NCBI GenBank assembly: GCA_964304625.1
Contig: OZ199839.1
Coordinates: 8,040,497-8,104,496 of the forward strand
DNA length: 64,000 nucleotides
Reading direction: 5' to 3'
Origin: Kudoa neothunni
Lineage: Eukaryota; Animalia; Cnidaria
The notes beneath the pieces were generated by a model. That model made no database searches, was not told where the DNA came from, and worked only from the letters and a program-made list of their open reading frames with translations. A program made the position numbers and the translations under genes. Positions 351 to 51,827 of the stretch are shown one piece after another (position 1 is the stretch's first letter; each line of letters begins with the position of its first letter).

Positions 351-1643
351 ATAAAGATTTACTTCAATAAGGTAGTTAGTTTATTTTTAATTATAATGAA
401 GGACTAAAATTAAAAATCCACATTAAAATTGATTTTTTTTAAATTTGCAACCCCATGATCCTTTGAAATCTTGGATCAATTTTAGTAAATGAAAAATTTG
501 AAATTTTGTAACCGAATATTTTCAACGAATCTAAATAATTCCATTTCATTAAAAATTTCGGAAACTAATGAATATTTTGTTTACCTACAAAACAATGAAT
601 GTGTATCTTCAATGGAAGTTCTCTTTATATAAAATTTAAAATAGTTATAATTAAATAAGAATACAAATGTTCCCTATTTTCCATAGAAAATGTAGAAAAC
701 TTTGAGCTAAATTTTTTCATTGCCAACTTATTTTCGAGAAACATAGAATTAGGTGAGAAAAGCGTATTTTCTTATTAAACTTTTCTGATATTAAAATAGG
801 AAATATTTTATAAGATATTTTATCAGTTAAAACCATATTGCGGAGAAAATCACTGAAATTTAATTTCTCAGATTTCGTTTTTGTGCAAACTAAGAGATTA
901 ATTTTGAAGAGAAAAATAAGTTAATAATGTATATTGATAATGTGTTGAATGATTTATGCATGTTGTGTAAAATACGCGATATAATTATTTAGCTTCATTT
1001 TGAATGAATAAAATAATTATTAATCAGGTTTTAGAGTTTTGTCCAAATATAAAAATGCTTGGAACTAGAGAAGTTATCCAAAAACTTAAAAATCAATTGA
1101 GAGTGCTTATATTGATAAATTTATCTATTTACTCATTTTAAGACACACGTGTACTACATGAAAATAATATTCGATACAACACTTGAATTTTAAATGACAA
1201 TAAAAAGATTTAATGTTAGCCCATAAATTGTTGGTTTTCATAACATCAATTATTACGGCTTTGTAAACTTATCGCCTAGTTTAAAAACGATAAATATTTT
1301 AACGTATCTAAAAATTACTTTGAATATTAAATATGTGTAGTTTTAACTGATAAAATGATTTTCAACCTATAATCAGATAAAACAACCTAAACAAATAAGA
1401 TTTATTATTACATTTAAATATAATTAATCGAATATTGAAAAAATTGGATTTTAGTTTTCCCATAATAAATGATATAGAATAAAGACAGAAACAATTTTCG
1501 AAATAATAAATATGCATGAAAATACATATTCAAGTTTTTTAAGTTATAGCTGAAGAAATACAATAGATAATTAATATCTATGATATTAATACTGTCACTA
1601 AATCGAACGTCAATTTGTGAAAGTATTCTTCATAAATAAAAAT

Positions 1644-4511
1644 CTAGTTTTTATTTTTCCAGTATCCGAAATAGAATCCCACACCAACAACAACGATGAG
1701 CGCTGGAACTACAACAGCAATAATTCTAAAATAATTGATTAACAAAATATCTCCATCAATAATTACATAGTATTTTTCGACCTAAAATAAATAAATTATA
1801 ATTCAAAAATTTTATTTTACATGGATTTGTTTGATTCGTCATCTAATCAAAATATCAGAACTAATGAACACTAATATTTAATCAATTACCTTTCTGGATC
1901 TCGACAAAACCAGTGATATTGTTATCCGTGCCATGATACAACATTAAACGGTAATTGTTGGTGTTATCCACATTTGAAATTGTAAATTCCTTGCATGATG
2001 GAAAAACAGAACAACCTTGTTCACCAGTTGTCATGCATTTTTGGACGATTGGTTTGGATGGATCATCCCAATTTTTCAATTCCCATTTGCATAACGACTG
2101 TTCATCAACGCCTGTAGGAAGAGAAGTTTTAACTTTTATGTTTTCGCCTTCTCTTGTAAACACCACAGTTAATTTGATCGGATTATTGGTGGGGGTAGGC
2201 TGTGGGTCTAAATTAAAATTTAATTAAAATATGAACGATATGAATTTAGAATTAGATGTTTTATTACTTATGGGTACTTGGATGGTAGTTTCTGCAGATC
2301 TGCCAACAGCCGTAACTAAAACTTCATATTCCTTGTCTGCTTCGTATCCTTCCTTGAATATAATTTCAATGCATAATGGCGGTTGTGCACATGGAGTGAT
2401 TTCTTTTTTTTTATTTGAAGATGGCACATTCTGTGGTTGCTGTCCATTAGTCGCCCTAGATATCGCTATTTTAGAAGGGTTTAGATACTGCAGAGGGTGT
2501 CCCAATCTTTGTTGTTGATGACGGTGGTGGGCATTGGTAGATCAACTCGGATTCTTGCCCTTTTTTTACGTTTACTTTATAGTGACAAACAGCCGTAGGA
2601 TATGGTGTTGACAGTACACCTGTCACTTTGAAGCCTTTTTCTATAAATTCTGATTGTAATGTGAGCGTTGAAAAAGCTTGAAACATAATTAGTTATATAA
2701 TTCGAGGTCAATTATTTATATACTCGTTGTAATTTTATATTCTTTTTCTCCATAATCCTTATGTGCAACAACCTTTAGGTCATATTCAGTTCCAGGCATT
2801 AATCCTATAATTTTTTGAGACTCCTTACAAAAACCCCTGCAAGGATAGCTATCTTCGCACATGGCACACACATATACATCCTTTCGATGAGGGCTTATAT
2901 AATAAGCACAAGTCTTGTCAGTAGATGCAATTTGTTCATTCCCATTTATTGCTTTAACAGACGCGGTTGTATCCGTTACTGTTGGAGTTGTTTCAGAAAA
3001 GGTTGGACCAGATTTCTTTGCTATATATTTATTTTAAACAATATTTTTTTCGATTATATTACCTGTTCGAAAGAATATATGTTCTTTAAAATCATTAGAC
3101 ATACCATTCGAATTCGGGGCTGCAATTTTAAGAATATATGGTTTTCCACTATCCAATCCTGTAATCGTAAATGCAACATCACAGTTCGTGCCACAATCTT
3201 CTTGGTCAGTTCCACACTTTGCCGTTACAACAACTGCAGGTTTGGGTTTGTCTGCTTCATAAAAAGTTACAGTACAAGTATCAAATCTAGGTTCATTTTC
3301 TGGTTTAAACAAGGGAACATTTAGCGTAACACCAGTAAGTGAGTGTGTTGACAATAAGGTAGGATCGGCAGATTCTGTGATAACTATAAGAAGAATATAA
3401 ATAAATAAAGCTTCATGAAATACCAAATTTTTTCTGAACATATCCGTCAAACGTGACGTCATTGATGGTCAATGGTAGATGTCTAGTTTGAATCAATATT
3501 TCAACAATAGATTTGGAGTCTTCAAATACGAGCTCAACATTATTACAAGGTGCATAACATTTATTCGTCGATCCACACACTGATTTGTATTCATTGTTAC
3601 TTGCGGATGCTAACACTTCTCTTACACTGAAAAGACATATTTCAAACGGAAATTTGTTTGTAAACTTTAGCATATACTTTGTCTTCACATTCGAACTATA
3701 GGTCACGTAATATTGTGGCTTATAAACATCAAAATTGAATAGGGTGTATTTATTTTGCAGGTTGTAAAAGAAACTGGGATAATTATCGCATTTCATTTCA
3801 TAATATGGAATCATCAAATTAAACTCCATTTCGCTTTCATTATTATCAATGCAACTTTCCTTAACTGTTCCGTCTTGGTATTTTACATCCTTGTAAAATA
3901 TCGGACATTTCACCGGTGTACAAGTTTTTGTACTCAGTTTCAGCTTTTGGTTGTTTGTTGTTATTGTTACTTGGGGATTGACCAATAATGCTAATAAAAA
4001 TTTATGAACAATCTTAGGTGCTTTAATTACTCAATTCCAATCCAAATACAACCCCACGATTATTTTTTGCTGCAGCGGTTGCTGCTGTATTATCCGTAAA
4101 AACGGCAATATACTTTGTTTTCGGAGAAAACTTGTCAAAACCAAGCTTATTTCCACTACTTGAACATGCCCAAACACATTGGTCATTATTTGTTCCTTCA
4201 ACACGACCAGGGCATTCGTTAATTTCAACAAGATCAGTGTTTTCAGTATTAGATTTTTTGATATGGCAATTTTTCCCCGAAACATAATTATTTCCACCTA
4301 ATATCAAATTAACCTCTAATTGATTATTCTGTTTCAAAAGTTTGTATTTTAAAGTATTTTCAGTATCAGCTGAATTTGGAGCATCTCGTTGGGCCACTTC
4401 TGTACTCATGAGCGGAGTGGAGGCTATATATAATTAGTTATATTTTTTGTGATTTTTATATATACATGAGAGGAAAGTGAAAATTCCTAAAAGGTAGACA
4501 AAGTCTTTCAT
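1644..4511 (-). CDS. Family A copy A1: spliced type I membrane protein with 7 Cys-rich FN3-like modules (one apparent +1 frameshift near 2478)
   Basis: ATG at 4511 (MKDFVYLLGIFTFLS, signal peptide-like). Exons are collinear with A2 and bounded by GT..AG. Ends ...VVGVGFYFGYWKNKN TAG at 1644. An extra C in a CCC run near 2478 splits ORFs 2471-2686 and 2224-2505. Confidence 0.85.
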
Positions 4512-5192
4512 TATATTTTGCAAAAGATAAAAACGATAGCTGTCGTTCAATATGAAACTCAAAAAGTTGATCGGATTATAATTCATATATTATATGTATA
4601 CCCAGAATTAATGTTCGTCTTTAAACCAATGAAGCATCAATGCAAATATTCCGGAAATACTAATTCATCTTAACAATTATTTTGACGGACAGTAATTTAT
4701 TATCTTGAATATTAATTTAAAGTAATATTACGAAAATGAGAAACATTCATAATATCAGAAGGAAATCCAACCTCAACTTTATCCCACACCATATATATCC
4801 ATTCACACATTTCCAATAAAAAAGAAGAGAGGATATAATGTTTCCATGAAATTGATAATTTTATTAAGTTTCGTAATCTTGGGAAATATTTTAAACAAAG
4901 TTCGATTGTTTTTTGTGTACGTAAAAAATGTCTTGTCAATTCCAACGTATAGGCTCCATTAGATTATAAAGTAACTCAAACGTTAAATTCTACAAAATTT
5001 ATTTTCTTAAAAAGGGTAAAATTAATCTTCCTTTTATGTATAACCGGTAAGACAATTTTATATAAATCTATTAGAATATTCATAAAAAGCGTACTAAAAA
5101 TTTGAACAAATATCTGTCCCCGAGCTTTTTTGAATATCTTATGAAATATTTTGTAGCATAATAATTTTTTACTTGTTGATGATTATTAATTA

Positions 5193-8919: not shown

Positions 8920-9674
8920 TAAATATGCCATATTAGCACCAATGTCATCAGTTAACTATTTAAATTCATCAAAAATCTGCGTATACAAAATTATTATTCC
9001 TATGGGATTAATGAAATATTCAGCTGTAAAATATTTCATTGGATTATCAAAAGACAATGATGTAGTGATACTAGCCAAAATTTTTCTTTCCTTATTTATG
9101 AATATGTTAATAGATTGTTTTTAAATAGATTTATCAGTAAAATTTCAAGTGAAGTAAAATGTTATCCTTCTTAAGAAAATAAACTTTTTTAATTCAACAT
9201 TTGAGTTATTTTGTACTCTAATGGATCCCATAATTTAGAGACGACAATGAATGGTTTTACGAGTCCAAAACCTGTTGAATTTTATTAAAAAGCTTACCAA
9301 AGATTACATAATTTAACAAAATTGTCAATGTCAAAGAAAACATGCATCCTCTTTTCTTTTTAATTGAAAGTAGGTGAATGGATATATATGGTGTGGAATA
9401 AAGTTTAGGTCGGATTTCCTTCTGATTATTAAGAATGTATCGAATTTTAATCGTATCTCTTTAAATTTATTTTAGGAGTTATAAATTACCATCCGCCAGA
9501 ATATTTTTTAAGATGAGCTAATATATCCGAGATTTTTGTATTGATGATCCATTGAGTTCAAGTCAAACATCAATTCTTTATGTATATATATATATATATA
9601 TGAATTATAATCCGATCAAATTTTTGAGTTTCATATTGAACGACAACTATCGTTTTTATCTTTTGCAAAATATA
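8920..9674 (+). promoter_or_regulatory. Conserved upstream region of family A genes (putative promoter/5'UTR)
   Basis: Recognisably homologous upstream of all five A copies (e.g. atatggtgtggaataaagtttaggtcggatttccttctgattatt), with a TA-rich tract about 75-95 nt before the ATG. Function is inferred from position only. Confidence 0.5.
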
Positions 9675-12591
9675 ATGAAAGCCTTTGTCTACCTTATGGG
9701 AATTTGTACTTTATTGTCATGTATATATCCAATTTCCAAAGAAATATTAATAACTTGTAGCCCCTTATTTGCTTATACACACTCAAGGAGGTCAGGGAGA
9801 TGCTCAAAATCCAGTTACTACTGAAAACTCTCTAACTTACAAACTTGTAAAAGTAGACAATGAATTGAAGGTTAATTTAATATTAAATGGAAATGACTAT
9901 CCCAGGGAGAAAAAGTGCCATATCAAAATATCAAATAATGAGGAAACAAACCTTTTTGATATTACTACATGTCCTGGTGGTGAGCAAGAAGTCAACAGTA
10001 ATCAATGTGTTTGGGCATGCTCAGGAGGTTCCGATAAACTGGGTTTTGATAAGTTTACTCACAACACTAAATATGTTGCCATCTTTACAGATAGCGCTGT
10101 AACCGCTGCTGCAAATAAAAATAATGGTGGAGCCGTATTTGGATTGGAATTTCGTAATTAAAGAACCTAATATTGTCAATAAATCTTTTTTAGAATTATT
10201 GGTCAATCCGAAAGTTGCAATTACGAAAAACAATCAAAAACTACAATTTAACACCAAAACTTATAAACCAGTGAAATGCCCCATATTTTACAAGGATGTG
10301 GAATTTAAAGAAGGAACACCTGAAAATACTTGCGATGAAAATTGTGAAAGGGAAGTGGAGTTTAATTTGATGATCCCACACTATGAAATGAAATGCGAGA
10401 ATTATCCTAGTTTCTTTTACATCCTTCAAAACAAATACACTTTATCAAACTTTGATGTTTATCAGCCACAATATTACGTGATCTATAGTTCGAGTGCTAC
10501 AACGAAATATATGCTAAAGTTTACAAACAAATTTCCATTTGAAATGTGTCTTTTCAGTATAAGAGATTCGTCAACAACAATTACAGAGACAACTACCGAT
10601 GACTATACATCAAAGTGTGGTTCGGACAACAAAAAATGTTTTGCACCTTGTAATAATGTTGAACTTGAATTCGCGACTTCCACTTCTGTAATTGAAGTAT
10701 TGATTCAAACCAGACACGTATCGTTGGTTAAAAGTGGCATCAAATACAATGGATATATTCAGAAAAAATTTGGTATTTAATGAATATTTACTCATTTATA
10801 ACCTTCTCATAGTTGTCACAGAAACTACTGCCACTCCATTATTGTCAACATACTCGCCTACTGGCGTTACATTAAATATTCAGTTGTTTAAGCCAGAAAG
10901 CAATCTCAAATTTTCTACTTGTACTGTAACTTATTTTGAAGCAGACAAACCTAAACCTGCTTCTTCTGAAGTTTCGAAATGTGAAGATGACAGCCCAACC
11001 TGTAGAACAGAGTGCACTAATGCAATAACGATTAAAGAGCTCGATAGTGGAAAACCATATATTCTCGAAATCGCAGCAGGCAATGGCGACGGTATTCTTA
11101 ACAATTTTAAAGAACATATATTCTTTCGAACAGGTAATATAATAGAAAACAAATATTTTTTAAAATAAATATATAGCAAAAAAACCTGAATCCACCTTTT
11201 TTGAGACAAGCCCAACAGTAAAGGACACTACTGCGTCAATTAAAGCAATAGATGTAATTGGTACAATTACACATGAAGACAAAACTTGTGCTTACTATAT
11301 AAGCCCTCATGGAAAGGATGTATATGTGTGTGCCATATGTGAAGATAGTTATCCTTGTAGGGGTTTTTGTAAGGATTCTCAAAAAATTATTGGGTTAATG
11401 CCCGGAACCGAATATGACCTAAAGATAGTTGCACATGAGGATTATGGAGAAAAAAAACATAAAATTACAACGAGTATATAAATAATTGACCTCGAATTAA
11501 ATAACTAATTATGTTTCAAGCATTTTCAACGCTCATACTACAATCGGAATTTATAGAAAAGGGCTTCAAAGTGACAGGTGTACTTTCAACACCACATCCT
11601 ACAGCTGTTTGTCAATATAAAGTAAAAGTAAAGAAAGGGCAAGAATCCAAATTGGTCTATCAGTGCCCACCACCAGCTTCTACAACAAACACTGGCCCAT
11701 CCTCCAATGCACCAAAAACTTCTAAAATAGCACTAGCTAGGACAACTAATGGACAACAACCACAGAACGTGCCGCCTTTAAATAAAAAAACCGGAATCAC
11801 CCCATGCACACAACCTCCATTGTGCACTGATATTATATTCAATGAAGGATACGAAGAAGACAAGGAATATATAGTTTTGGTTACGGCTGTCGGCAGATCT
11901 GCAGAAACTACCATCAAAATACCCATAAGTAATAAAACATCTAATTCATATCGTCTTACTTTGGTTGAGTTTTTAAAATTATTAAAAATATGTACATTAA
12001 TTCTTATTATACTAAATTTTAATTTAGATCCACAACCTACCCCCAGTAACAATCCAATCAAATTAACTGTGGTGTTTACAAGAGAAGGCGAAACCATAAA
12101 AGTTAAAACTTCTCTTCCTACAGGCGTTGATGAACAGTCGTTATGCAAATGGGAATTGAAAAATTGGGATGATTCATCCAAACCAATCGTCCAAAAATGC
12201 ATGGCAACTGGTGAACAAGGTTGTTCAGCTTTTCCATCATGCAAGGAATTTTCAATTTCAAATGTGGATAATACCAACAACTACCGTTTGATGTTATATC
12301 ATAGTACAGATAGCAATATCACTGGTTTTGTCGAGATCCAGAAAGGTACTTGAAAAAATGTTATTGGTCGCTATTTCTCATTTTTGATTAGATGATGAAT
12401 CAAATAAATCCATGTAAAATAAAATTTTTAAATTCTTATTTATTTATTTTAGGTCGAAAAATACAATGTACTTCTTGATAATGATATCTTGTTAATCAAT
12501 TATTTTAGAATTATTGCTGTAGTAGTTCCAGTGCTCATCATTGTCGTTGGTGTGGGGATTCTATTTCGGATACTGGAAAAATAAAAACTAG
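9675..12591 (+). CDS. Family A copy A2: ~825-aa spliced type I membrane protein with 7 Cys-rich FN3-like modules
   Basis: Exons: 9675-9720, 9761-10153, 10194-10772, 10813-11133, 11177-11473, 11521-11928, 12028-12345, 12392-12413, 12453-12467, 12509-end. All introns are GT..AG (40, 40, 40, 43, 47, 99, 46, 39, 41 nt) and the frame stays open. Signal-like MKAFVYLMGICTLLS; FN3-like GLMPGTEYDLKIVAH; TM IIIAVVVPVLIIVVGVG. An extra G near 12555 gives the tail ILFRILEK* (stop 12584) instead of FYFGYWKNKN* (12591). Confidence 0.9.
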
Positions 12592-13325
12592 ATTTTTATT
12601 TTAGAAGAGTGCTTTCACAAGCTGACGTTCGATTTTAGCGACCGTATTAATATCATAGATATTAATTATCTATTATATTTCTTCATTACTTACTTTTAGA
12701 TGTATAATTATTTATTTACATGCAAATTTATTTATTCGGAAATTGTATTTCTCTCTTTATTTTTTATTATTTATTTGTAAAAACTAAGACATAATTCTTT
12801 CAATACAGTAATAATTGTTATTTGAAAATAATAAGAAATTTTTGTTATAGATTACTTCTTTTATCTTACGAAAATTAGTAAAGCATGGTGCCTATTAAAG
12901 AGGGTAAAAACTTTTTGAAATAATATATTGATGTACTTTTGATTGTAAATTAAATGTTTTGATCATAAAACCTAATAATTAATAATAAATGAATCATCAA
13001 TTTATGAGCTAACCTAGAAATCCTATATTATTTGTGTCATTTATAATTTAAATGATGTACTAAATAAATAGTTTGATGTAGAATGTATTTTTCATTGTAT
13101 TATCAAGCAAACCAAAAAATTAATTAGTTAGTAAATAAGAACACTCTCAATTGATTTTTGGTTTTTTGAATAAACCATTTAATTCCGAATATCTTTAGGA
13201 TTGGAAAATACGCTTAAACTTAATTAATAATAAATGTAGAATCCATCTGAAACAATACTAAATAATTTTTCCATGATGCATCTTAATAAATATAACGAAA
13301 CACATTAGTATTATCAATATATATT

Positions 13326-14336: not shown

Positions 14337-14787
14337 GCCGAGGACAGATAGCACATCGGTGTGACACTCAGACTCAGAACCATGAGGAAATGGTTCGAAT
14401 CCGCCGGTGGTCGGACTACTGCTTCCGTTTCGGTGGGTCTCCATCCCATATTTGGGAGCTGTGGTTAAAGTGTAGGCTCACTGTGGAATGGGGTGTATTA
14501 ACAGCCAAATTCGCGTGAATAGGAGTTTGAATCTCCGGAACCCATTGAAAAGGCAAGTAATTTGCAGTCCCCACAGAGTCAATGTCCTTAAAGGGATAAG
14601 GTTTGGGTGGTGGTCGCCCTGAGACGAGGATGTTAAGTGGATTAAAGGTCCCACATTACTGCATAAAGATAAGGGGTGGGGTTTCATGTTATGTCCTGTG
14701 GTGCCTAAAGCGTTAATGGAAGAGGTCTGACCAACCAGAATTCCACAACCTAATAAGTTGCCCCAGGGGTTTTCTCTATCAAACAAA
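14337..14787 (+). mobile_element. tRNA-derived SINE, copy 1 (~450 bp)
   Basis: GC-rich island with a Pol III A-box-like TAGCACATCGG and B-box GGTTCGAATCC in the first 70 nt, then ~380 nt of body. An inverted second copy lies at 36204-36679. Confidence 0.8.
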
Positions 14788-17120
14788 TAGAAATTACCTT
14801 ATTCGTAAATATTTAACTTTCTTTTCAGTAACACTACCATACATGACTAGATACGACGAATATTTTATTATTTTTTGCGACTTTTTTCGTAGAGAAAATG
14901 TCTCAGATCATTAACTATAATTCATTTTTTTGGAAAAATAATCGTAAATTATATCTGTAATAACTATATGTAAGTTTTATAGAGATTGACTAAATAAGAA
15001 AAAATTAAAAAAACCTTTATTTATAATTTTACAACATTTTATCTTAATACTTACCAACAATTTTCCAAAAATGTAAGTTCTAAATGAGGAAGAGGTACAT
15101 AAATGATTTTAATGTCTCGTGGCTCTTGAAAATTTGGGAAAACTTAAGGTTGGCTACCGATCTTGATAAGTCTGGCCATCCTTGATATATATAGTAGATA
15201 AAGGATAAATTTCTTTCAGCATGAAATAATTAAAATACTATTTTTAAACGTATTAATCGTAATTATGGGATTTCGCAAGCATAGTCGCAAAAAAAGAGGT
15301 TAAAATTGCTGAGTTCAAAAATGACCCCAAACGTTCCCCGTAGAATTTTTCCGAGCACCGTTCTTCGGGGGTTCAAATTAAGAAAGAATTTAACGGTACA
15401 ACAATTAAAATTAAACATATTTTAACGGAAAACAAAGTAATTTGCAACATTAATAGCACTTCAAAAGAAGAAATCATAAGTAAAATTGACACGAGCGGGC
15501 AGCAACAGCGGATGATCGTATAAAATCGGGAACAACGGATTAAAATGAATAAAGATGTCTTGTCACTAATTTGTAATTTACCGTAAGTTTTAAGGCATAT
15601 GTAAAATGCACAGTTCAAATTAACTCTTGATATTTGATTTATACGTTCTTTTTTTCAGGCCTAATTTGTTATTAGCAAACTAGATTAGTTGCGTTATTTC
15701 TGTTACGTAATTTTTAATTTTCATTGCATTGCTCTGTTTTAAAAAAATTTTTCCTTATAAATTGAATAATATAATAAATAGATTTTCAGAATTATAAAGT
15801 TAAATTTAAAAAAAATTCCACTATGTTTAAACTACTTGATTGATTCTCTTTAAAAAATCACTAAAATTAAATGTTTTAACGGAGGAACTACATACATCCT
15901 TCTAGCGAAAAGCTTAGAGTAAAGAAAAGTAAAGTAAATATGAGATTAGATAAGTTATTTGGGGATTAAGACTCGGTAATCCGCAAGGAAATTCTATAAT
16001 AAGCAAAGTTTCATCATTTACTCAATTAAATATTACATTCTAAATCAATAAATCTACAATTATAATAGAAAAATAAATTTTCTCAGTACATGTCTGTTTT
16101 CCTTAAAAACGAAACATATTTTTGTCGCTAAAGACAAAAAAAATCATTAAAATTAGCCGATAATAATTTTTTAAAATGAATTGTTTTTATGCCATTCTAA
16201 GTGTTATACATTTTTAGAAGAATTCCGGAATTTATGGATGGTTTAGCTTTGTATGTCGAAAATTAGGTTCAAAATTCGTTGGCTTTGGGTCCACGCGGAC
16301 CCCACTCCGGACTGGGAGGGTTAACCGGAACCCCACTATCCAGAAAGAAAATAGTCGGTCAAAAATATTCCAGATAATCGAAGTTTGACTGTATATAGTA
16401 GACAGTAGATTGCACCAATACCAACAACCAAATATTTTTTAATTCGTCGTAAATCTCTCTGTCAAAAAATTATGATTCCTCAGAGATTAATGAAATATTC
16501 GGCTTTAAAAAGTTTTATTGGATTTTCCAAAAACTTTGGTATAGCGATATTAGATAAACTTTTCTGTTCTTTATTTATAAATATTCTGATAGGTTGATCT
16601 TAAATTTTGTTGTCAGTAACACTTGAAAAGAGGTTAAATTTCCCCTCCCGTAAGAAAATGAAAATAAATAAACAACAATTTGGGGTTATTGTATAATCTA
16701 ATGGATTCCATACTTTAGAAATGACAATCATTTGTTTAACGTATCCAAGACCTGTTGATCTTTATCTAAAATCTTAACCAAGATTACATAATTTAATAAA
16801 ATTGTCAATGTCAAGAAAACCATATACCCTCTTTTCTTTTTTATTGAAAGTATGTGAATGAATATAAATGGTTTGGAATAAAGTTTAGGTCAGATTTCTT
16901 TCTGATTATTAAGAATGTATTCAATTTCCGTGATATACCTTTAAATTAATATTCAGGATAATAAATGACTATTTGTCAAAATATTTGTATTGTTGTTTCA
17001 TTAGATTTAAGGCGAACGTTAATTCTGTATATATATTATATATATATGAATTATAATCCGATCAAATTTTTGAGTTTCATATTGAACGGCAATTATCGTT
17101 TATACCTTTTTCAAAATATA

Positions 17121-20046
17121 ATGAAAGACTTTATCTACATTTTGGGAATTTGTATCTTTCTGCCGTGTATATATACACATAAAACAAACAACATTACTAA
17201 TAATATATAGCCTACTTATCGCTTATAGACGCGCAACCGGCCCAGGGAGATGCCTCAAGTCCAGTTTCTACTGAAAGCCCTTTAACTTATAAACTTGTAA
17301 AAGAGACAAGTGGATTGAAGATTAATTTATATTAAGTGGAGCCGATTATACTGGGGAGAAAAATTGTCATATTAAACAATCCAACAAACATGACACGAAT
17401 CTTGTTGAAATTGACGAATGCTCTGGTCGTGTTGCAGGTGTATCTAGTGGTAAATGTGTTTGGACATGCTCTGGAGATGATAATAAATTCGCTTTTGACA
17501 ACTTTTCTCCAAGGACTAAATATATTGCTGTTTTATACGGATAATGTTGCTACCATCGCTGAAGCGAAAAATAATAACGGGGCTGTATTTGGATTGGAAT
17601 TTCGTAACTAAAGCATGCTAATATTTTCCATCAATTTCTTTTAGCATTATTGGTCAATCCACAGGTTACAATAACGAAACAAGAACAGACAAAAACTGAA
17701 ATTTGCCACAAAAACTTGTACACCGGTGAACTGTCCGATATTTTTACAAGGACGTGGAATATGCAGTAGGGACAGCTCAGGTAAGTTGCGATGCAAATAA
17801 TGAAAGTGAAATGGAATTTAATTTGATGATTCCACATTATGAAATGAAATGCAAGAATTACCCCCAGTTTCTTTTATAAACTGCAAAATAAATACACACT
17901 ACAAACATTTGATGTTTATCAACCACAGTATTATGTTACCCTCTAGTTCGAGTGCTGCAACGAAGTATATGCTAAAGTTTACAAACAAATTTCCTTTTGA
18001 AATATGTCTTTTCAAAATAAAAGAGGTGCCAACAACTGGTAATAGCGACTACATGTCCAAATGTGGTTCAGCAGATACATGTCATGCACCTTGTAATAAC
18101 GTAGAACTTGAACTCACCACTTCAAAGCTTATTGTTGAAATATTGATTCAAACTAGGCACGTATCTTTGGTTAAAAAGGACGACACATATGAAGGATATA
18201 TTCAGAAAAAATTTGGTATTTAATGGATATTTGCTCATTTATAACCTATTCATAGTTGTCAAAGAAACTACTGACTCTACCTTATTGTCGGCACACACAC
18301 CTACCGGTGTTACATTAAATGTTCAGTTGTTTAAGCCAAATGATACACCTAATTTTGAGGGTTGTACTGTAACTTATTATGAAGCAGATAAACCTAAGCC
18401 TGATACTGCTGCTCAAACGCCAAAATGCGGAAACTCTGATACACCATGTAGAGCGGAATGCACTGCTGCTCTAGTGATTTTGGGGCTTGATGGTGGAAAA
18501 CCATATATTCTTGAAATTGCAGCAAGCAATTCCAATAGTCCTGTTAGCGGCTTAATAGAACATATATTCTTTCGAACAGGTAATATAATAATAAAAATCT
18601 TTTTTAAAATAGATATATAGAAACGAAACCTGGTTCTACCTATTCAACGACAAACCCGACAGTAAAGGATACTACTGCATCAATCAAAGCAATAGATGGA
18701 ACTGAAACAATTACACATGAAGACAAAACTTGTGCTTACTATATAAGCCCTCATGGAAAAGATGTATATGTGTGTGCCATGTGCGAAGATAGTTATCCTT
18801 GCAGGGGTTTTTGCAAGGAGTCACAAAAAATTATAGGATTAATGCCTGGAACCGAATATGACCTAAAGATAGTTGCACATGAGGATTATGGAGAAAAAAA
18901 AACATAAAATTACAACGAGTATATAAATAGTTGAATTCTAATTATATAACTAATTATGTTTCAAGCTTTGTCAACGCTCACACTACAATCAGAATTTATA
19001 GAAAAAGGCTTCAAAGTGACAAGTGTACTTTCAACACCACATCCTACAGCTGTTTGTCACTATAAAAATAAACGTAAAAAAAGGGAATGAATACGAGTTG
19101 GTCTACCAATGCCCACCATTGGCTTCTACAACAAAGATTGGGACACCCTCTGCAGCATCTAAACCTTCTAAAATAGCGATATCTAGGGCAACTAATGGAC
19201 ATCAACCACAAGGTCTGCCACCTTCAAATAAAAAAACCGGAATCACTCCATGCACACAACCACCATTGTGCACTGATATTATATTCAATGAAGGATACGA
19301 AGAAGACAAGGAATATATAGTTTTGGTTACGGCTGTCGGCAGATCTGCAGAAACTACCATCAAAATACCCATAAGTAATAAAACATCTAATTCTAAATTC
19401 ATATCTTTTATATTTTAATTAAATTTTTAAAATTATTAAAAATATGTACATTAATTCTAGTTATACTAAATTTTAATGTAGATCCACAACCTACCCTCAC
19501 TAATAATCCAATCAAATTAACTGTGGTGTTTACAAGAGAAGGCGAAAAACATAAATGTTAAAACTTCTCTTCCTACAGGCGTTGATGAACAGTCGTTATG
19601 TAAATGGGAATTGAAAAATTGGGATGATCCATCCAAACCAATCGTCCAAAAATGCATGACAACTGGTGAACAAGGTTGTTCTGTTTTTCCATCGTGCAAG
19701 GAATTTACAATTTCCAATGTGAATAATACCAACAATTACCGTTTGATGTTATACCATAGTACCAATAACAATATCTCTGGTTTTGTCGAGATCCAGAAAG
19801 GTAATGGATTAAATATTATTTGTCATTATTTCTGATATTTTTATTAGATGATGAATCAAACAAATCCATGTAACATCAAGTTGTTAAATTATAATTGATT
19901 TATTTTAGGTCGAAAAATACAATGTACTTATTGATGGAGATATTTTGTTAATCGACTATTTTAGAATTATTGCTGTAGTAGTTCCTGCGCTCATCATTGT
20001 TGTTGGTGTGGGATTCTATTTCGGATACTGGAAAAATAAAAACTAA
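17121..20046 (+). CDS. Family A copy A3 (several single-base frameshifts: pseudogene or sequencing errors)
   Basis: ATG 17121 (MKDFIYILGICIFLP). Same exon layout as A2; ends VVGVGFYFGYWKNKN TAA at 20046. Indels, mostly in homopolymer runs, break exons 2, 3, 5, 6 and 7. Confidence 0.8.
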
Positions 20047-20351
20047 ATTTTTGTTTTTGAAGAATGCTTTCACAAATTGACTTACTATTTAGCGACAGTA
20101 TTAATATTATATCATATGTATTAGTAATCTATCAGATTTCTTCATTACTTACTTTTAAATTCATAATTATTTAGTTTAATGCAAATTTATTTATTCGAAA
20201 ATTGTATTTCTGTCTTTATTCTATATCATTTAATATGGGAAATTAATATTATTATTTCATGATAAGAATATTTTATTTAATAGTAAGAATCAACCCTTTT
20301 GGATGTATTATTTTATCTCATTACTAGTGGAAATCGTGATATCCGTTAACC

Positions 20352-27320: not shown

Positions 27321-28971
27321 CAGTGTGTTCCCTACAGGGGATGCGAAGAGCCATCGTTAGGGGATGGGAGTCATTCAAGAATAAATTTAACAATTAATCT
27401 TAGTTTATTCACTTCGTATTGTTCATTAGCCCCCGTTTAAATCATGTAAGGACGTAATGCGTATAGTAATTATTAGGTATTGGACGCATACCTCTTCGAT
27501 ATAAGGATTAGCGATATCCGCGAACTATATTGTATTAAGGCACAACACGTGTATTCATTTTGTTGTTGTTCAGTTAGGGTTGTCTCTTGATAGCGCACAT
27601 TACGCTAGGCTTCTTAGACGTAACAGTAATATTTCTGGTTGTTTCGATATCAATCAGTATCGGTTCAAAATGGGATTTGATAATTTATTTAATTTATAAA
27701 TCATTCTATTTGATTCTACGAAATAGCGCAGTAAGGTAATAGTTTTTATTATGCATGTTCAGCGTACAAAATCTAACTATCGCTCTTTTCATGTAAAATA
27801 GTTACTTTGATATCTTTCAAAATAACATATTTATATTCTTAAGCTGTAATTAGGTTGTCAGCATTTTTATCTACTTAGAAATAATCTATATCCATAAAAA
27901 TAAAACCACGATGTAGTTTTAACTTCGTTTTCTGTCTAAATTTGAGATCTATCATTTAATTACATAGTTTTTATAATGGTACATATTAAATTTTACTTTC
28001 AAATTTGTGCCCTGCCTCTGATATAAATATAAGTTAAATTGTTCTTGAAAGTATAAGTAAAACAAGGATCAAAGCATTCATTTATATACATAAATAAACG
28101 AAAACAAACTTTAACAATATATTAGTTATTTTATTCGAGTATGTTTAGAAGGCATATTTTTTGAATTTTCGGAATTTTTCTTAACCCACTGCCTCAAAAT
28201 TTATATTAAAATATGACTCAATATAGAATAAGGAATTCGCTAGGTTTTTCCGTACAAGATGGTATATGAGACAAGCTTATCGACTTCATTATATACAAAT
28301 AATAATTATCGGAATTCATTAATCCCCGAAAACGATTTCATGTTTCATATTCCTACAAAATGTCCTGCTTTGAATTACTGATGAAAACCCAGCGGGAGTT
28401 AGAGAACCGCCCGCTCAAATAAATGCTGAATAACAATTGATTTTGAAATAATGTTTCTTGTGAACCATACGAATCGGCTATTTTTATTTGACTCATTTCA
28501 TTTTTACCTTTAAGCACAGGACTTATTTAAGCGACCATACTGTTTATAGTTTAGTATTACGTTTATATTTATTTTTGACGTCTAATATTTTGGAATAATT
28601 GTAATAACATTATTTATTACTTTACATAAAAATGGTATATATAAGCAGGAATGAATAATAGCTCCAATCATTGAGTGTTAAATCATGAGGAGCGAAAAGA
28701 TAATATCGTCCATTTTCGATTATACATAGCAAGTTGAGTTAACCAAAACATTTTGGTTTTAATTTATTTTAGACGTGAAGGGGAAAATTTGAAGTTAAAT
28801 ATAAACTAAAATAATAAAAATTTTAATTCTAAGACATTTTTCATTGGTATTATTATTTTCGCATTTAAATAAAAAGTATAATTGAGTCTTGACATTCACA
28901 TGGAGGAGGGGATACAAAATGAACGTGGAAATTAGGATGGGGATATGGATGTAAAATTTGTAGGGAACACA
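27321..28971. mobile_element. Non-autonomous hAT-like element
   Basis: Left end CAGTGTGTTCCCTAC; right end GTAGGGAACACA (last 3 nt missing); GGGGAT subterminal repeats at both ends. No matching TSD. Confidence 0.65.
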
Positions 28972-28974
28972 TTT

Positions 28975-29302
28975 TTAAAGTCTCTAAGAAGTTGGAACTT
29001 GAATATAAATGGACGGACAATGATTTGGAAATAACAGTAAAGATGCGGGAAGAAGAGATGGAATTTGCGATTTTACCTTTGTGGAAAAAACAGAAGGAAA
29101 GGAAACAAAGCTACTTGCTGTACACGACCTAACAAACAGCTGGAATGAGCCGTGAAACTCTAAAATCACCCGTTTTGATGTTTCTGAGTACAGATCAGCC
29201 ACAGTTATTGTCCAACGCAGATCTGACGGTGAGCCAGTTGAGCTGGAACTCTTTGCCACAGCATTGACAACCGAAACAACTGCTACCACTACAAGCACCT
29301 AG
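28975..29302 (+). pseudogene. Orphan last exon of a family C gene
   Basis: Close copy of 61087-61433 (ELEYKWT...DGICDFTFVEKTEGKETKLLAVHD...ETTATTTST*). Has an in-frame TGA near 29153 and a frameshift. Upstream exons are absent, replaced by the hAT element. Confidence 0.85.
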
Positions 29303-29937
29303 AAATACTTCTGAAAATTTAATTAGTTTTCAAATATCTTTCTCTTTGATTATCAATTAAATAGTTGACAGGTTTTTTAATTTATCTTTCGTATTTATAG
29401 TATTGTCTCTGTTTTTCAATATAATATTATTTTTTACACTAATTAAAAATTCTTTTAATTAATTTTTGTCTGAATATTAATAGAAAGTATTATTTGTAAG
29501 CAATATAGATTGATTTTTTATTAAACTGAATATTTTTATGAAAAAGAAATTAATATTATTATGTTAAAGCTATGACAATAGAAATAATTATCTTAATTTG
29601 TAGTTCTATAGTTTTTAAAGGATTATTAAGTATACATTGATTTCTTAATAGGCTAATGGAAGAATAATCGATCATAAATTTAAAAAAAAATTTTTTATCT
29701 AAGTGAAGCATTTGTACTTTAATATGTTTGTTTTTTTATGACATTATTAATAAAGTAGAAAAGTTTGTAGTTTTCGTTTTATTGCTATTTATCGACTCTC
29801 AATTGTATTGTGGAAATGCTATTCAGTCTCGTAGTTCGTACTTCAATTGTCTTGTTTCGTTCCTATTGTCATCTAGAGTTATTCATTTGTATAATTATTA
29901 TTAAAATTAATAACGCCGTTATAATTAAGAACCAAAA

Positions 29938-32200
29938 ATGTTGGTCATTGCATTGTTAATCATTTCTCTCTGCTACAATGGTGAAATAAGCAAGAAGTGG
30001 GATTATCTATAATAGATATATTTAGCCCACTCACACAAATACTACGTCCAACGAGATCAAACCGAATTAGAGGATACAATCCATTTAAAACTTGAAGGAG
30101 TTTCTGGAAGTAAAATGCAACGTTCAATTGTTGGAAAGAAACGAATTTTTCTATCACTATATTGGGAGTGAATCTGAAGGAAAACAACTTAAGGATGTCT
30201 CTTGTGTCGGGAAATACACTATTCCAACTGGAGCTGCTTTTCCATTCTATTATGTACAGATAAGATCCGAATATGCAACTGAAACTCTTAAAATAATCCA
30301 TAGTAATTCAATTTTTAGAAATTTTCCCCTAATTTTCTTGTAGTCACTGACACTATCCCTCAAACTCAATTTAAAAGTAAACGAAACCTCAATCGAATTC
30401 ACCCACTAAAAATGTCTGCAGTCATCCTCAAACTTGTAAACTAACAAGTGGTGACAAAGTCCTGGATGAGTTCATTCCAACCTCTGAAACCGAGTGCGAC
30501 GCTGAAACCAGGCTCGCCGGATTCTTTGATTCAATAGGCGACTCAGTTGAACTCTCTTGTGGTGTCAATCAGCCAAAAATACACATGTATAGAAAAAATA
30601 ATATGGCCATGGAATTCAATCCATTAGACAAACTTACGTATCACATTGAAAAAGTCAATGGTGGAACTAGTAAAATAAAAATTGTTTTTGATGAGGACTT
30701 GAAGGATGAAGTGTGCAAATTTGAGATTAATAAAAAATCTACAGAAGGTTTTACATCAAATTGCTCGGTTTCAAATGATAACGAGAATTGTTATCAACTC
30801 TGCGCTGATGTTGCAATGGACTTAACATTTGCTGACACAGACAAAGATTTTAAAGTTAAAGTATCGACTAGAAATCATGCAGGAATAGAGAAAATTCTAA
30901 GAAGTAAAATTCTTGTTTAAATAATTTTATTTAAATGTCAATTAGTTGACAAAGGTAACCTAGAAGTAACTCCAAAAGAAACCAATGCAACTCTTTCTAT
31001 CCGTGCTCTTATAGATGATTTGGGAACTGCAACTTGTGCAATTGAGTTGAAAAAGCAAGAATTCCCTAAATTTAACATTGGCGCGAAATGCAATGCCGAT
31101 TCGACGACGCCATGCCCAACAAGTTGCGAAGATGCTACCATCCTTGATCTTGAGCCAAATACAAAATATATCGTTAAAGTGACTTACACTAAAACCAGTG
31201 AGACTTCTAAAACATATATTGCAGAGAAGCTATTTAAAACTAGTAATAAATAAAAAGTAATTGATCTAAAATTTAATTAAGCTGACTACAATATAACGCA
31301 ATTGCCTGAGATTAAAGCATATTACGAGCACGTAAAAATGACTGTAGCACCGAACGTGGCTCTGTTTGACAGAGTATACTGTAAAATTCAACAAAAAATG
31401 GTGGGCGAAACTGCTTTCAGCCCATCTGAATGCGAAGAATCGGTTGATTGTTCAGGTTTATGTGGACAGCCACTCACTATTAAAAACCTTTTTCACGATA
31501 CTGAATACGAATTTAAATATTTATTTGGAAAGTACGTTAGTGACCTTGATAAAAACAAGGTGACAGTATCGACAAGTAATGTACAATATAAATCTCCCAA
31601 TGACATTTATTAAGTTGCAACGCTTCAAAAAATCAATGTTACCCACACGTGGAATAACACCGATCTGATAGTCACAACGACAATGGAACAGATGGATCCA
31701 GACCAAATTTGTGATTATACATTTGCCCAAATAGTAGATGGAGTTGTCAAATATACTTACGGATTATATGATAAAACTACTGGATGGGAGGGGAAATGCA
31801 ACCAAGAAATAACCTTTTACAACGCTGCCTTCCTACAGAAGGGGATCAATGAAAGTACAGGCCAGATACGTTAGTGAGCCGATCGTTGTGAGCCTTTGGG
31901 CTGGAGGAAATGAGGATAATTTTGATCCAAACTTTCCAGAAACTGGTAAACAAGGTAAATAATATTATATAACCATTATTTATAATCCATTTTAGGCACT
32001 TCGAATAGGTAGGATAGTTTTATGTTAGAGTATTCAATTAACTATTAACTTTAATTTAGCGCTAATGTTGGTGGAACCAAAATTCTGTAATATTATCTGT
32101 TCCCATACAGTTCTAATGATGATTTAGGTTGATTGTTGGCGGCGTTTTAATAGCACTGATGGTTTTCGCTATTGTTTTCTTGGTTTTGACAAAGAAATAA
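29938..32200 (+). CDS. Family B copy B1: spliced type I membrane protein with 6 Cys-rich FN3-like modules (about four homopolymer indels)
   Basis: ATG 29938 (MLVIALLIISLCYN). GT..AG introns at 29981-30025, 30303-30343, 30904-30945, 31243-31281, 31576-31614, 31955-31995, 32009-32059, 32087-32127. FN3-like ILDLEPNTKYIVKV and IKNLFHDTEYEFKY; TM LIVGGVLIALMVFAIVFLVL followed by TKK*. Confidence 0.85.
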
Positions 32201-36203: not shown

Positions 36204-36679
36204 ATTTTTTTTGTTTACAAGGTAAAACCCTTGACGCAACTTGTTAGGTTGAGGAATTCTGGTTGATCAGACCTCTTCCATTAACGCTTTAGGCACCGCA
36301 GGACGTAACATGAAACCCCGTCGCTTATCTTTATGCGGTAGTGTGGGACTTTAACCCACAAAACATCCTCGTCTCAGGGCGACCACCACCCCAAACCCTA
36401 TCCCTTTAAGGACGTTGGCTCTGCGGGAACTGCAAATCATTTTGCCTTTCGATGGGTTCCGGAGATTTAAACTCCTATTCACGCTCACCCCCACTTCACG
36501 CAAATCTGGCTGCCAGTGCATCCCACCCCACAGCGAGCGTACACGTTAATCACAGCTCCCAAATATGGGATAGAGACCCACCGACACGGAAGCAGTAGTC
36601 TGACCACCGGCGGATTCGAATGCATTACCTCAAGGTTCTGAGTCCGAGTGTCACACCAATGTGCTATCTGTCCACGGGC
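36204..36679 (-). mobile_element. tRNA-derived SINE, copy 2
   Basis: Reverse complement aligns end to end with 14337-14787 and ends in an A-rich tail (GTAAACAAAAAAA). Confidence 0.8.
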
Positions 36680-37225: not shown

Positions 37226-37824
37226 GCTCGAGGGGACTCAACGGGTCGTGGGCACCTCGAACCCGATTCCTATTTTAGTGCTCACGGCCCGTCCGCCACT
37301 GTATTATTTAATGATATAATTTAAATAAAATGATTGTAGAATAATATCGTTGTATAAATTCGAAGGGACAAAATTTTTCCCTGCAGCGCTCGCGTGAAAA
37401 GTTCGAAAAATCGGTTACCTACTGTAGCACGCTCCCGAGGAAACCCGTAGTTTTCGTGCTAGTATTACATAATTTAATAAAGTTATCAATGTCAAAAGAA
37501 TCACATATATTCTTTTCTTTTTGACTGTATATATGTGAATAGATATATATGGTGTGGAATAAATTTCAGGTCGATTTCCTTCTAATTATAAAGAATGTGT
37601 CTAATTTCCGTGATATTCCTTTGAATTAATATTCAGGATAATAAAATTATTATCCTTCAAAATATTTGTTAAGATCAATTAATATTTCCGAAATATTTGT
37701 ATTGATGTTTCATTGGGTTTAAAGCGAACATTAATTCTGTGTATATATGTATTAATTATAATCCGGTTAAAATTTTGATTTTTATATTGAACGAAAACTA
37801 TCGTTATTTCTTTTGCAAAATATA

Positions 37825-40681
37825 ATGAAAGACTCTGTTTACGTTTTAAGAATTTGTACTTATCTGACGTGTATATACACACAAACGGTCCTGGGAGGTG
37901 CTTCAAATCCAACTACTACTGAAACCCCTTTAATTTATAAACTTGTGGAAGAGAGCAATCAATTAAACGTTAATTTTATATTAAATGGAAATTATTATAC
38001 TGGGGACAAGAAATGTCATATAAAAAAAGCTGATGATGATGGCACGAAACCTTGTTGAAATTGCTACATGCCCCGGTGATGCTTATACAACAGATGGTGA
38101 AAAATGTGTTTGGACATGTTCAGGAAGTACCAATAAGCTAGCTTTTGACAAGTTCTCCCCAAAGACTAAATATATCGCTATCTTTAGCGATAATGACGCA
38201 GCGACCGCGGCTTCGAAAAATAATAATGGGATTGTATTTGGATTGGAATTTTGTAACTAAAGGATCTGTGTTCAGTAAATTTCCTTTAGCATTACTGGTG
38301 AATCCGCGAGTTTCAATAACAAGGGAGGGGAAAAAACTGAAATTGAGCACAAAAGCTTGTAACTCGGTGAAATGTCCCATATTTTACAAGGGCGTGATAT
38401 ATGATGAGGGAACAACTCAGAGAAGTGGCATTGCAAATATTGAAAGTGAAATGGAGTTTAATTTGATGATTCCACATTATGCAATGAAATGCGATAATTA
38501 TCCCAGTTTCTTTTACACCCTGCAAAATAAATACACTCTTTTTAACATAGATGTTTATCAACCACAATATTACGTGACCTCTAGTTCGAGTGCTCCAACG
38601 AAGTATATGCTAAAATTTACAAACAAATTTCCCTTCGAAACGTGTCTTTTCAGTATAAGAGAAGTGCCAACAGCAGGTAGTAACGGTGGATACACATCGA
38701 AATGTGGTTCAGCAGATAAATGTTATGCGCCATGTAATAATGTTGAACTTGAATTCACAGCATCCAAGTCTGTTGTTGAAATATCGATTAAAACCAGACA
38801 CGTACCACTGACCATCAATAACATCCCTTATATTGGGTATATTCAAAAAAAATATGGTAATCCAAAAACATTTTAACTATGATAATCTTCTTATAGTTGT
38901 CATCGAAACTACTGCTCCTACCTTATTGTCAGAGCATTCATCTACTGGTGTTAAGTTAAATGTTCCCTTGTTTCAATCACAAGCTGCTGTTAAATTTTCT
39001 GGATGTACTGTAACTTATTATGAAGCAGACAAACCAAAACCTGCTGACCTTGTTCCTGATGGGGCGAAATGTGGAACTGGTAAAACAGACTGTGGCAACG
39101 AGTGCACGACTGCTCTAGAAATTACAGGATTGGATAGTGGAAAACCATATATTCTTGAAATTGCAGCTGGTAATAACGCTAGCCCTCTTCAAGATTTTAA
39201 AGAACGTGTATTCTTTCGAACAGGTACTATAATCGAAAAAAATATTCTTTTAAATAAATATATAGCAAAGAAATCTGATCCAACCTTTTCTGAAACAACT
39301 CCAACAGTAACGGATACAACCGCGTCTGTTAAAGCAATAGATGTAACTGGTACAATCACAAAAGACGACAAAACTTGTGCTTACTATATAAGCCCTCATA
39401 GAAAAGATGTATATGTGTGTGCAATGTGCGAAGATAGTTATCCTTGCAGGGGTTTTTGCAAGGATTCTCAAAAAATTATTGGGTTAATGCCTGGAACCGA
39501 ATATGACCTAAAGGTAGTTGCACATGAGGATTATGGAGAAAAAGAACATAAAATCACAACGAGTATATAAATTGATGAATTCTAATTATATAACTAATTA
39601 TGTTTCAAGCTTTGTCAACGCTCACACTAAAATCGGAATTTATAGACAAAGGCTTTAAGGTGATAGGTGTACTTTCAACACCATATCCTACGGCTGTTTG
39701 TCACTATAAAGTAAACGTAAAAAAAGGGAGTGAATCCGAGTTGGTCTACCAATGCCCACCATTGGCTTCTACAGCAAACACTGGAGCAACCTCTAAAGTA
39801 TCCAAGACTACTAAAATAGCACTAGCTAGGACAACTAATGGACACCAACCACAGAACGTGCCGCCTCCAAATAAAAAACCAGAAATCACTCCATGCACAC
39901 AACCTCCATTGTGCACTGATATTATATTCAAAGAAGGATACGAAGCAGACAAGGAATATGTAGTTTTGGTTACTGCTGTCGGCAGATCTGCAGAAACTAC
40001 CATCAAAATACCCATAAGTAATAAAAAATCTAATTCTAAATTCATATCGTTTATATTTTAATTACATTTTTAAAATTATATACATTAATTTTTTATTATA
40101 CTAAACTTTAATTTAGGCCCACAGTCCATCCCCACTAATATCCAATCAAATTAACTGTGGTGTTTACAAGAGAAGGCGAAAACCATAAAAGTTAAAAACT
40201 TCTCTTCCTACAGAGCGTTGATGAGCAGTCGTTATGCAAATGGGAATTGAAAAATTGGGATGATCCATCCAAACCAATCGTCCAAAAATGCATGGCAACT
40301 GGTGAACAAGGTTGTTCAGCTTTTCCATCATGCAAGGAATTTTCAATTTCAAATGTGGATAACACCAACAATTATCGTTTGATGTTATATCATAGTACAG
40401 ATAGCAACATCTCTGGTTTTGTCGAATCCAGAAAGGTACTTGAAAAAATGTTACTGGTCATTATTTCTGATAATTTGATTAGATGATGAATCAAACAAAT
40501 CCATGTAACATCAAGTTGTTAAATTATAATTGATTTATTTTAGGTCAAAAAAATACAATGTACTTATTGATGGAGATATCTTGTTAATCAATTATTTTAG
40601 AATTATTGCTGTAGTAGTTCCAGTGCTCATCATTGTTGTTGGTGTGGATTCTATTTCGGATACTGGAAAAATAAAAACTAG
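37825..40681 (+). CDS. Family A copy A4 (intron 1 lost by deletion; several single-base frameshifts)
   Basis: ATG 37825 (MKDSVYVLRICTYLTCIYTQ...). ORFs 38145-38876, 38833-39570 and 39600-40061 match A2 exons. TM exon at ~40601-40681. Indels at ~38048, 40140-40215, ~40427 and ~40647. Confidence 0.8.
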
Positions 40682-40744
40682 ATTTTTATTTATGAAGAAT
40701 GCTTTCACAAGCTGACGTTCGATTTAGCGACCGTAATTAATATC

Positions 40745-41430
40745 ATAGATATTAATTATCTATTGTATTTCTTCAGCTATAACTTTTAAAATCTGAATAT
40801 GTATTTTCATGCATATTTATTATTTCGAAAATTGTTTCTGTCTTTATTCTATATCATTTATTATGGGACAACTAAATCCAATTTTTTCAATATTCGATTA
40901 ATTATATTTAAATGTAATAATAAATCTTATTTGTTTAGGTTGTTTTATTTGACAAAAAGTTGAAAATCATTATACCAGTTAAAAGTACCCATATTTAATC
41001 TTCAAAGTAATTTTTAGATATGTTAAAATATTTATCGTTTTTAAACTAGGCGATACGTTTACAAAGCTGTAATAATTGATGTTATGGAACCAACAATTTA
41101 TGGGCTAACATTAAATCTTTTTTATTGTCATTTAAAATTCAAGTGTTGTATCGAATATTATTTCATGTAGCACACGTGTGTCTTAAAATGAGTAAATAGA
41201 TAAATTTATCAATATGAGCACTCTCAATTGATTTTAAGTTTCTGGATAAATTATCTAGTCCAAGCATTTTTATATTTGGACAAAACTCTAAAACCTGATT
41301 AATAATTAATATTTTATTCATTCAAAATGAGGCTAAATAATTTTATCGCGTATTTTACACAACATGCATAAATCATTTAATACATTATCAATATACATTA
41401 TTAACTTACTTATCTCTTCAAAATTAATCC
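40745..41430. repeat. Inverted near-identical copy of ~895-1590 (3' flank shared by A1 and A4)
   Basis: For example, gtgtcttaaaatgagtaaatagataaatttatcaatat at ~41178 is the reverse complement of ~1109-1146; collinear throughout. Confidence 0.85.
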
Positions 41431-51820: not shown

Positions 51821-51827
51821 ACATTAA

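Follow-up and report, generated by a model that had tools for sequence, protein, structure and literature searches.

Sequence exchange among related gene copies is known from several kinds of system. In Borrelia vlsE, Anaplasma msp2 and the mosaic variant surface glycoproteins (VSGs) of Trypanosoma brucei, there are one or few expression sites, the silent donors are promoterless or truncated, the loci lie at telomeres or on plasmids, and change is somatic or clonal during infection. The var genes of Plasmodium falciparum form largely subtelomeric clusters, are under strong diversifying selection, and are expressed in a mutually exclusive manner. Concerted evolution is known from primate globin and opsin duplicates, from MHC and KIR clusters, and from Drosophila and plant resistance-gene clusters. 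Here we analyzed a 64,000-nucleotide stretch of chromosome 2 of the myxozoan cnidarian Kudoa neothunni, a poorly studied parasite of tuna (contig OZ199839.1, positions 8,040,497 to 8,104,496; hereafter, the window), which contains five copies (A1 to A5) of a gene family that we call family A. The copies are patchworks of one another, and we consider it probable that germline interlocus gene conversion and unequal crossing-over within a linked cluster best explain the pattern.

A first-pass annotation of the window had reported that short blocks of exon 6 are shared among the five copies in groupings that no single tree can fit. The range in question, 11661-11885 (+), lies within exon 6 of A2 (11521-11928, +), an intact exon of 408 nt that is bounded by AG and GT and is of phase 1-1. 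We aligned the five exon-6 copies with MAFFT and scored parsimony-informative sites for incompatible two-versus-three splits, in A2 coordinates. Successive runs of linked sites group the copies differently (Table 1). The pairwise homoplasy index (PHI) with permutation gave p<=0.0005 for exon 6 and p=0.001 when restricted to 11661-11885, and the Hudson-Kaplan bound (Rmin = 12) requires at least 12 recombination events within these 408 nt. Adjacent site pairs supporting the same split numbered 15, versus 4.0 expected (run test, p<=1e-4). A GENECONV-like permutation test of exon 6 gave global p values of <0.002 for A4-A5, 0.008 for A2-A3 and 0.026 for A2-A5, and 154 of 910 parent-parent-child triplets were at p<=0.004. 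The incompatible groupings are thus borne out by every approach: by recombination tests of the kind that the annotation had proposed (PHI and GENECONV-like) and by the run and triplet tests, all of which are significant. Five of its six block contrasts are visible at the nucleotide level as runs of linked sites, but the remaining one, HQPQ versus QQPQ, exists at the amino-acid level only: the His codons of HQPQ differ between A3 and A4 (CAT versus CAC), so this motif is not a shared tract. As assembled, exon 6 carries 1-nt indels in A1 (an insertion near 2479), A3 (~19064) and A5 (~49394, 49305 and 49224). The peptides that had been quoted for these three copies are therefore conceptual, as they are read across frameshifts.

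A genome search identified at least 23 close exon-6 copies, 15 of which lie in one cluster on chromosome 2 (C2:7.956-8.171 Mb; at least 15 copies within 215 kb, in both orientations). We aligned all 15 units of this cluster, whose members outside the window carry c-numbers (e.g., c04). Each is a complete unit that extends from the signal-peptide exon (exon 1) to the transmembrane exon (exon 10) and has its own 5' flank and conserved AG/GT splice sites, and the mosaic pattern is common to all of them. Partner switching spans the whole 4.3-kb unit, including introns and both flanks, as seen in sliding-window identities and nearest-neighbor painting, and PHI gave p<=0.001 for every partition of the unit in the 5-copy and 15-copy sets alike.

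We painted each copy under a copying model with the 14 other cluster copies as possible donors. Painted segments had a median length of 86 alignment columns (interquartile range, 49-162). Within exon 6, A2 was painted as one segment, A3 as three (c12-like, then c13-like at ~19044-19225, then A2-like), and A1 and A5 as five to six. With only the four remaining window copies as donors, these exons split into more and worse-fitting pieces, which indicates that the 15-60 nt spacing of partner switches is partly a sampling effect over overlapping older events. Switching over short intervals, as first described, is present, but its apparent spacing arises in part because only five copies were compared, out of at least 15 that exchange sequence. 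We found no recombination hotspot in exon 6: painting placed 5.1 breakpoints per copy per kb there, versus 7-10 in exons 2-5.

Recent exchange has left tracts of perfect identity of 120-790 bp between copies that are otherwise 72-85% identical (Table 1). The partner of A2 in one of these tracts, c05, lies 43.5 kb upstream of A2 and outside the window; the two units are otherwise ~76-82% identical, and painting assigned A2 11232-12038 to a single c05 segment with 5 mismatches. Recombination or gene conversion among paralogues is strongly supported, but the description of it as short-tract is only partly apt.

Near-identical pairs of copies show what exchange has added since their duplication. 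A1 is ~100% identical to c04 apart from ~10 replaced patches, and A4 is ~99-100% identical to c06 over the 5' 2.4 kb, with exon 5 to exon 10 overwritten. The differences within both pairs fall mainly into 7-10 discrete patches, each 10-700 bp long, and for some of these there are 99-100% identical donors elsewhere in the cluster; the patches are replacements that postdate a recent duplication. Tracts are also shared by oppositely oriented copies, namely A4(+)/c12(-), A5(-)/c14(+) and A3(+)/c13(-), and many tracts are internal patches with two switches, as in A3 (A2, then c13, then A2 again; triplet test, p<=5e-5). Inverted partners and internal two-switch patches fit conversion without crossover better than simple unequal crossover. 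Exchange follows linkage: of 105 pairs within the cluster, 40 share an identical tract of at least 100 bp, whereas none of the 120 pairs of a cluster copy with a dispersed copy does. Such a tract was otherwise seen only in two copies on chromosome 3 that lie 6.4 kb apart (C3:1734340-1741208) and are ~80% identical overall; their identical tract of 396 bp shows that the same local exchange operates outside the main cluster. Inside the cluster, we detected no dependence of exchange on distance (Spearman p 0.2-0.7).

The effect of exchange on divergence varies along the gene. Synonymous divergence (dS) between copies drops steadily, by four-fold, from distal exon 2 to membrane-proximal exon 7 (Table 1), and introns in the 3' half (82-90% identical) are more similar than exons in the 5' half (71-80%). 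Because introns and synonymous sites are homogenized, homogenization must act on DNA and not on protein alone. The ratio of nonsynonymous divergence (dN) to dS gave no sign of exon-wide diversifying selection, being below 1 in every exon (0.27-0.62, exon-level averages), and shows that family A is under purifying selection. Distal exons are nonetheless highly divergent (dN 0.16-0.29). Across three parts of exon 6, dN/dS is 0.31, 0.44 and 0.35; the middle value belongs to the loop, which is the fastest part of the exon (dS 0.27, dN 0.12).

The family-A gene consists of 10 exons. In A2, a signal-peptide exon is followed by six domain-sized exons, two micro-exons and a transmembrane exon; exons 2-7 (A2 9761-12345; likewise in other copies) are all of phase 1-1 and are separated by phase-1 introns of 40-99 nt. 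The five window units are 78-83% identical to one another overall and 85-90% identical (nt) in exon 6. The cluster is internal to the chromosome, at 7.96-8.17 Mb of 12.04 Mb and ~3.9 Mb from the only assembled telomere, a (TAAACC)n array that terminates contig 2 at 12.04 Mb. The assembly we used comprises 40,260,978 bases in four contigs, the fourth of 18,219 bp. These values agree with the published K. neothunni assembly, which was recovered from HiFi data of yellowfin tuna and has 40.2 Mb in three chromosomes, a mitochondrial contig of 18,219 bp and TAAACC as its telomere repeat (PMC12239612). RNA was too scarce for transcript-based annotation of that genome (PMC12239612).

The window also holds other repeated sequence. 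Segments 28967-30688 and 61075-64000 are 79-92% identical and overlap open reading frames (ORFs) of a more distant, surface-protein-like family B, and segments 14338-14787 and 36210-36677 form an inverted pair with 84% identity. Fragments of piggyBac-type transposases lie between A5 and the next gene, at 52109-53424 (+) and 56667-57712 (-) (Pfam DDE_Tnp_1_7, E 1e-15 to 2e-6); their distribution over several ORFs suggests decayed elements.

Table 1. Family-A units, A2 exons with divergence between copies, groupings of linked sites in exon 6, and identical tracts between cluster copies (positions in window coordinates)
Feature	Position	Strand	dS	dN/dS	Remarks
Unit A1	1016-5166	-			exon 6 at 2268-2676
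Unit A2	8950-13300	+			exon 6 at 11521-11928
Unit A3	16437-20232	+			exon 6 at 18966-19374; putative pseudogene
Unit A4	37464-41344	+			exon 6 at 39610-40017
Unit A5	48141-51836	-			exon 6 at 49029-49437; putative pseudogene
A2 exon 1 (E1)	9675-9720	+			signal peptide
A2 exon 2 (E2)	9761-10153	+	0.56	0.53	
A2 exon 3 (E3)	10194-10772	+	0.50	0.32	
A2 exon 4 (E4)	10813-11133	+	0.43	0.62	
A2 exon 5 (E5)	11177-11473	+	0.36	0.28	
A2 exon 6 (E6)	11521-11928	+	0.22	0.38	
A2 exon 7 (E7)	12028-12345	+	0.15	0.27	
A2 exon 8 (E8)	12392-12413	+			
A2 exon 9 (E9)	12453-12467	+			
A2 exon 10 (E10)	12509-12585	+			transmembrane
Grouping A3+A4	11673-74				run of linked sites
Grouping A1+A5	11676-81				run of linked sites
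Grouping A1+A3 with A2+A5	11690-11718				~12 linked sites
Grouping A2+A4	11732-42				run of linked sites
Grouping A3+A5	11765-69				run of linked sites
Grouping A2+A3	11794-11871				run of linked sites
Tract c14-c15					716 bp
Tract c03-c05					666 bp
Tract c05-A2	11242-11886 (A2)	+			645 bp; exon 5, intron 5 and nearly all of exon 6
Tract A5-c14					334 bp
Tract A5-c15					273 bp
Tract A2-c15					245 bp
Tract A4-c12	~39741-39942 (A4)				202 bp, within exon 6; c12 inverted relative to A4

Family A is predicted to encode a type I membrane protein with a signal peptide, an ectodomain of beta-sandwich modules of fibronectin type III (FN3) or immunoglobulin (Ig)-like type, one transmembrane helix and a minimal tail, from which we infer a surface location. 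Protein searches were run per exon translation rather than on the joined spliced protein. Among six exon translations, Pfam fn3 and DSCAM-Fn3 matched exons 4 and 5 below cut-off (E 6e-4 to 0.08), and exon 6 had no Pfam match. From an alignment of 14 family sequences, AlphaFold2 (AF2) modeled exon 6 as a seven-strand sandwich of modest confidence (predicted local distance difference test [pLDDT] 60). Its residues 53-91, between strands 4 and 5, have pLDDT <50 and are predicted to be disordered. According to the translation and this model, 11661-11885 codes for a Cys-bracketed, P/S/T/N/K-rich loop and the next two strands, and the variable blocks first noted in exon 6 sit mainly in that loop. 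Foldseek found no match at E<=0.001 in the PDB; the best match was weak (E 0.05), and the top matches were all FN3/Ig-type domains. A search of the ESM Atlas with exon 3 returned nothing useful. An exhaustive HMMER search with the exon 6-7 reading frame retrieved only 15 short unnamed fragments (ENA, Logan assemblies) among 1.84 billion representative proteins. By these searches, the family appears to be undescribed and restricted to this lineage.

We judged the state of each copy, as assembled, against the A2 exon model. Only c04, c05 and c12 among the 15 copies are free of frame disruptions; A3, A5 and c13 have 5-6 each, and the remaining copies have one or two. A3 has an in-frame stop in E2 with no indel cause and frameshifts in E3, E5, E6 and E7, and A5 has frameshifts in E2 to E7, three of them within exon 6. 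In E10 of A2, a run of G is one base longer than in the 14 other copies, which alters and shortens the C-terminal tail as assembled. Homopolymer assembly errors are unlikely overall to have caused the frameshifts: (i) disruptions are unevenly spread, as the counts for A3, A5 and c13 versus c04, c05 and c12 show; (ii) the in-frame stop of A3 is not indel-derived; and (iii) the consensus quality value (QV) of 48.5 predicts <1 error in all coding sequence examined. The comparison of A1 with c04 also points to good base accuracy: over 4.3 kb with 45 homopolymer runs of at least 5 nt, no more than two 1-nt indels separate them. Together, these points argue that most disruptions are real and that the cluster is a mixture of genes and pseudogenes that are still exchanging sequence. 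Judged by their reading frames, at least three cluster copies are pseudogenes, whereas the status of the single-indel copies A1 and A2 is uncertain.

We propose that the copies exchange sequence by homology-directed repair, through non-reciprocal interlocus gene conversion and unequal crossing-over. Exchange would occur in the germ line and over evolutionary time, with single events copying ~100-800 bp. Many overlapping events, with donors mostly outside the window, would make exon 6 of the five window copies look like a patchwork of 15-60 nt pieces. Exchange would work best in exons 5-10, the membrane-proximal half with its high identity, and would there homogenize introns and silent sites as much as exons. 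Older variant blocks would persist, reshuffled, in the exon-6 loop, a predicted disordered stretch that appears more weakly constrained.

Several considerations weigh against this proposal. For many of the replaced patches, no copy in the assembly is a perfect donor (best match, 83-95%); the original donors have been lost, have diverged or were not sampled. A single genome does not reveal in which direction or when the events took place. The published k-mer coverage is only ~7x (PMC12239612), and we know mosaic junctions and frameshifts from the assembled sequence. Finally, the block that carries c04 to c06 might be a retained haplotig and not a true duplicate. A 200-N scaffold gap (C2:8040297-8040496) abuts the window start exactly, and C2:7992014-8040296 (c04-c05-c06) is colinear with window 896-46500 (A1-A2-A4) over 43-48 kb at 94-97% identity, with A3 in the second block only. 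The repeat period is maintained on either side of the gap, and the place in the first contig where the start of the second would be expected does not match it. Since the sequence is colinear with the next repeat unit across the gap, a haplotig is the less likely reading; the block probably arose by unequal crossing-over as a real tandem duplication of higher order, 46-49 kb in size. Cluster copy number and pseudogene status need read-level validation.

We considered whether the same recombination has been co-opted as a generator of diversity. Under this alternative, mitotic or meiotic ectopic recombination would make chimeric surface proteins on which fish immunity selects, in a var-like, population-level manner without a dedicated expression site. 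We regard this as unlikely. We are similarly doubtful that family A is a host-facing variant surface repertoire in which recombination keeps making chimeric ectodomains, with pseudogenes as a reservoir, as in var genes or chicken Ig; if true, this would be a diversity system in a cnidarian parasite of vertebrates. The predicted protein architecture, the size and lineage restriction of the family, the strong divergence of the distal exons, and the role of pseudogenes as exchange partners all suit such a system, and for some myxozoans there are reports of antigenic variation at the level of phenotype, its molecular basis being unknown (bioRxiv 10.64898/2026.02.11.705288). However, dN/dS points the other way both exon-wide (0.27-0.62) and in the exon-6 loop (0.44), and mosaicism in exposed loops is no stronger than in introns. 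K. neothunni also resides inside muscle fibers, where antibody pressure is doubtful. In the membrane-proximal half, exchange has on balance homogenized the copies and not diversified them.

Assembly could in principle create mosaics, either as chimeric contigs or by mixing haplotypes or strains when a natural infection is meta-assembled at low coverage. The assembly is HiFi-only, was made with hifiasm-meta and purge_dups with no polishing step mentioned, and has a QV of 48.5 (PMC12239612). The ~7x coverage, the purging of haplotypic duplication and the use of a metagenome assembler leave room for such errors (PMC12239612), as does the gap directly before the window, beside a 94-97% identical block of 43 kb. 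We nevertheless consider an artifact very unlikely, because blocks of 15-200 nt that are 10-20% different from their neighbors are far below HiFi read size, and overlap assembly therefore cannot stitch them. Polishing with short reads played no part, a single gap-free contig carries all five window copies, the same pattern recurs in all 15 copies and in the separate chromosome 3 pair, and A1 and c04 are nearly free of indel differences over their 4.3 kb.

The annotation had likened the locus to vlsE, msp2 and mosaic VSGs. In a system of that type, programmed segmental conversion would copy silent donors piecewise into one expressed locus during infection. Partners do switch over short intervals, and several pseudogenes still share tracts with intact copies, but we give this reading scarcely any credence, and the analogy is unsupported. 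All 15 copies are full-length, with exon 1, the transmembrane exon and splice sites, and have no expression-site or cassette architecture. The cluster is internal to its chromosome, exchange looks reciprocal and touches introns, flanks and every copy, exon 6 is no hotspot, and dN/dS is <1, including 0.44 in the loop. Parallel substitution at fast-evolving, low-complexity loop sites, with no recombination at all, can be dismissed: although the loop evolves faster than the rest of exon 6 and the HQPQ contrast is amino-acid-level convergence only, this explanation is refuted by the spatial clustering of incompatibility (PHI, run test), by blocks of up to 12 linked co-varying sites, and by perfect tracts of several hundred bp that join otherwise divergent copies.

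Interlocus gene conversion and unequal crossing-over thus remain the preferred explanation, and the data document active homologous exchange in a myxozoan genome. The genome description left the contribution of recombination open, and paralogue families and interlocus conversion are not discussed there (PMC12239612). Our analysis also marks a large, unannotated, lineage-restricted membrane-protein family that is possibly exposed to the fish host. For family A, trees, orthology calls and dN/dS estimates can be relied on only when each segment is treated by itself.

Comparison with known systems places family A as follows. Within myxozoans, candidate variant surface proteins, both VSP-like and RIFIN/STEVOR-like, have been described in Sphaerospora molnari, with no gene-conversion analysis reported (bioRxiv 10.64898/2026.02.11.705288). 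They resemble family A in being expanded, lineage-restricted membrane-protein families in a context of immune evasion, but they are Cys-rich with CXXC motifs or RIFIN-like, whereas family A has predicted FN3/Ig-like modules. With vlsE, msp2 and VSGs, family A has in common a segmental, non-reciprocal-looking transfer among related copies with pseudogene partners, but it shows none of their features that could be tested, namely architecture, location, and confinement to exposed regions with diversifying selection. The var genes (and rif/stevor) are likewise a large family of full-length surface-protein genes that form mosaics without a single tree through recombination among paralogues without cassettes; they differ in that the family-A cluster is internal and its dN/dS is <1. 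Among parasite systems, var-type ectopic recombination seems a nearer analogue than the cassette systems. The closest known process is concerted evolution of tandem families, which likewise involves paralogues that are linked and lie in both orientations, patchy tracts from tens to hundreds of bp long, homogenized introns and silent sites, dependence on linkage and local identity, and genes mixed with pseudogenes. Family A differs from the described cases in belonging to a myxozoan cnidarian, in being an undescribed family as far as our searches reach, and in its strong 5'-to-3' gradient of homogenization within the gene. The mechanism is textbook concerted evolution and not a new kind of system; what is new is the example, in a gene family that had not been described.

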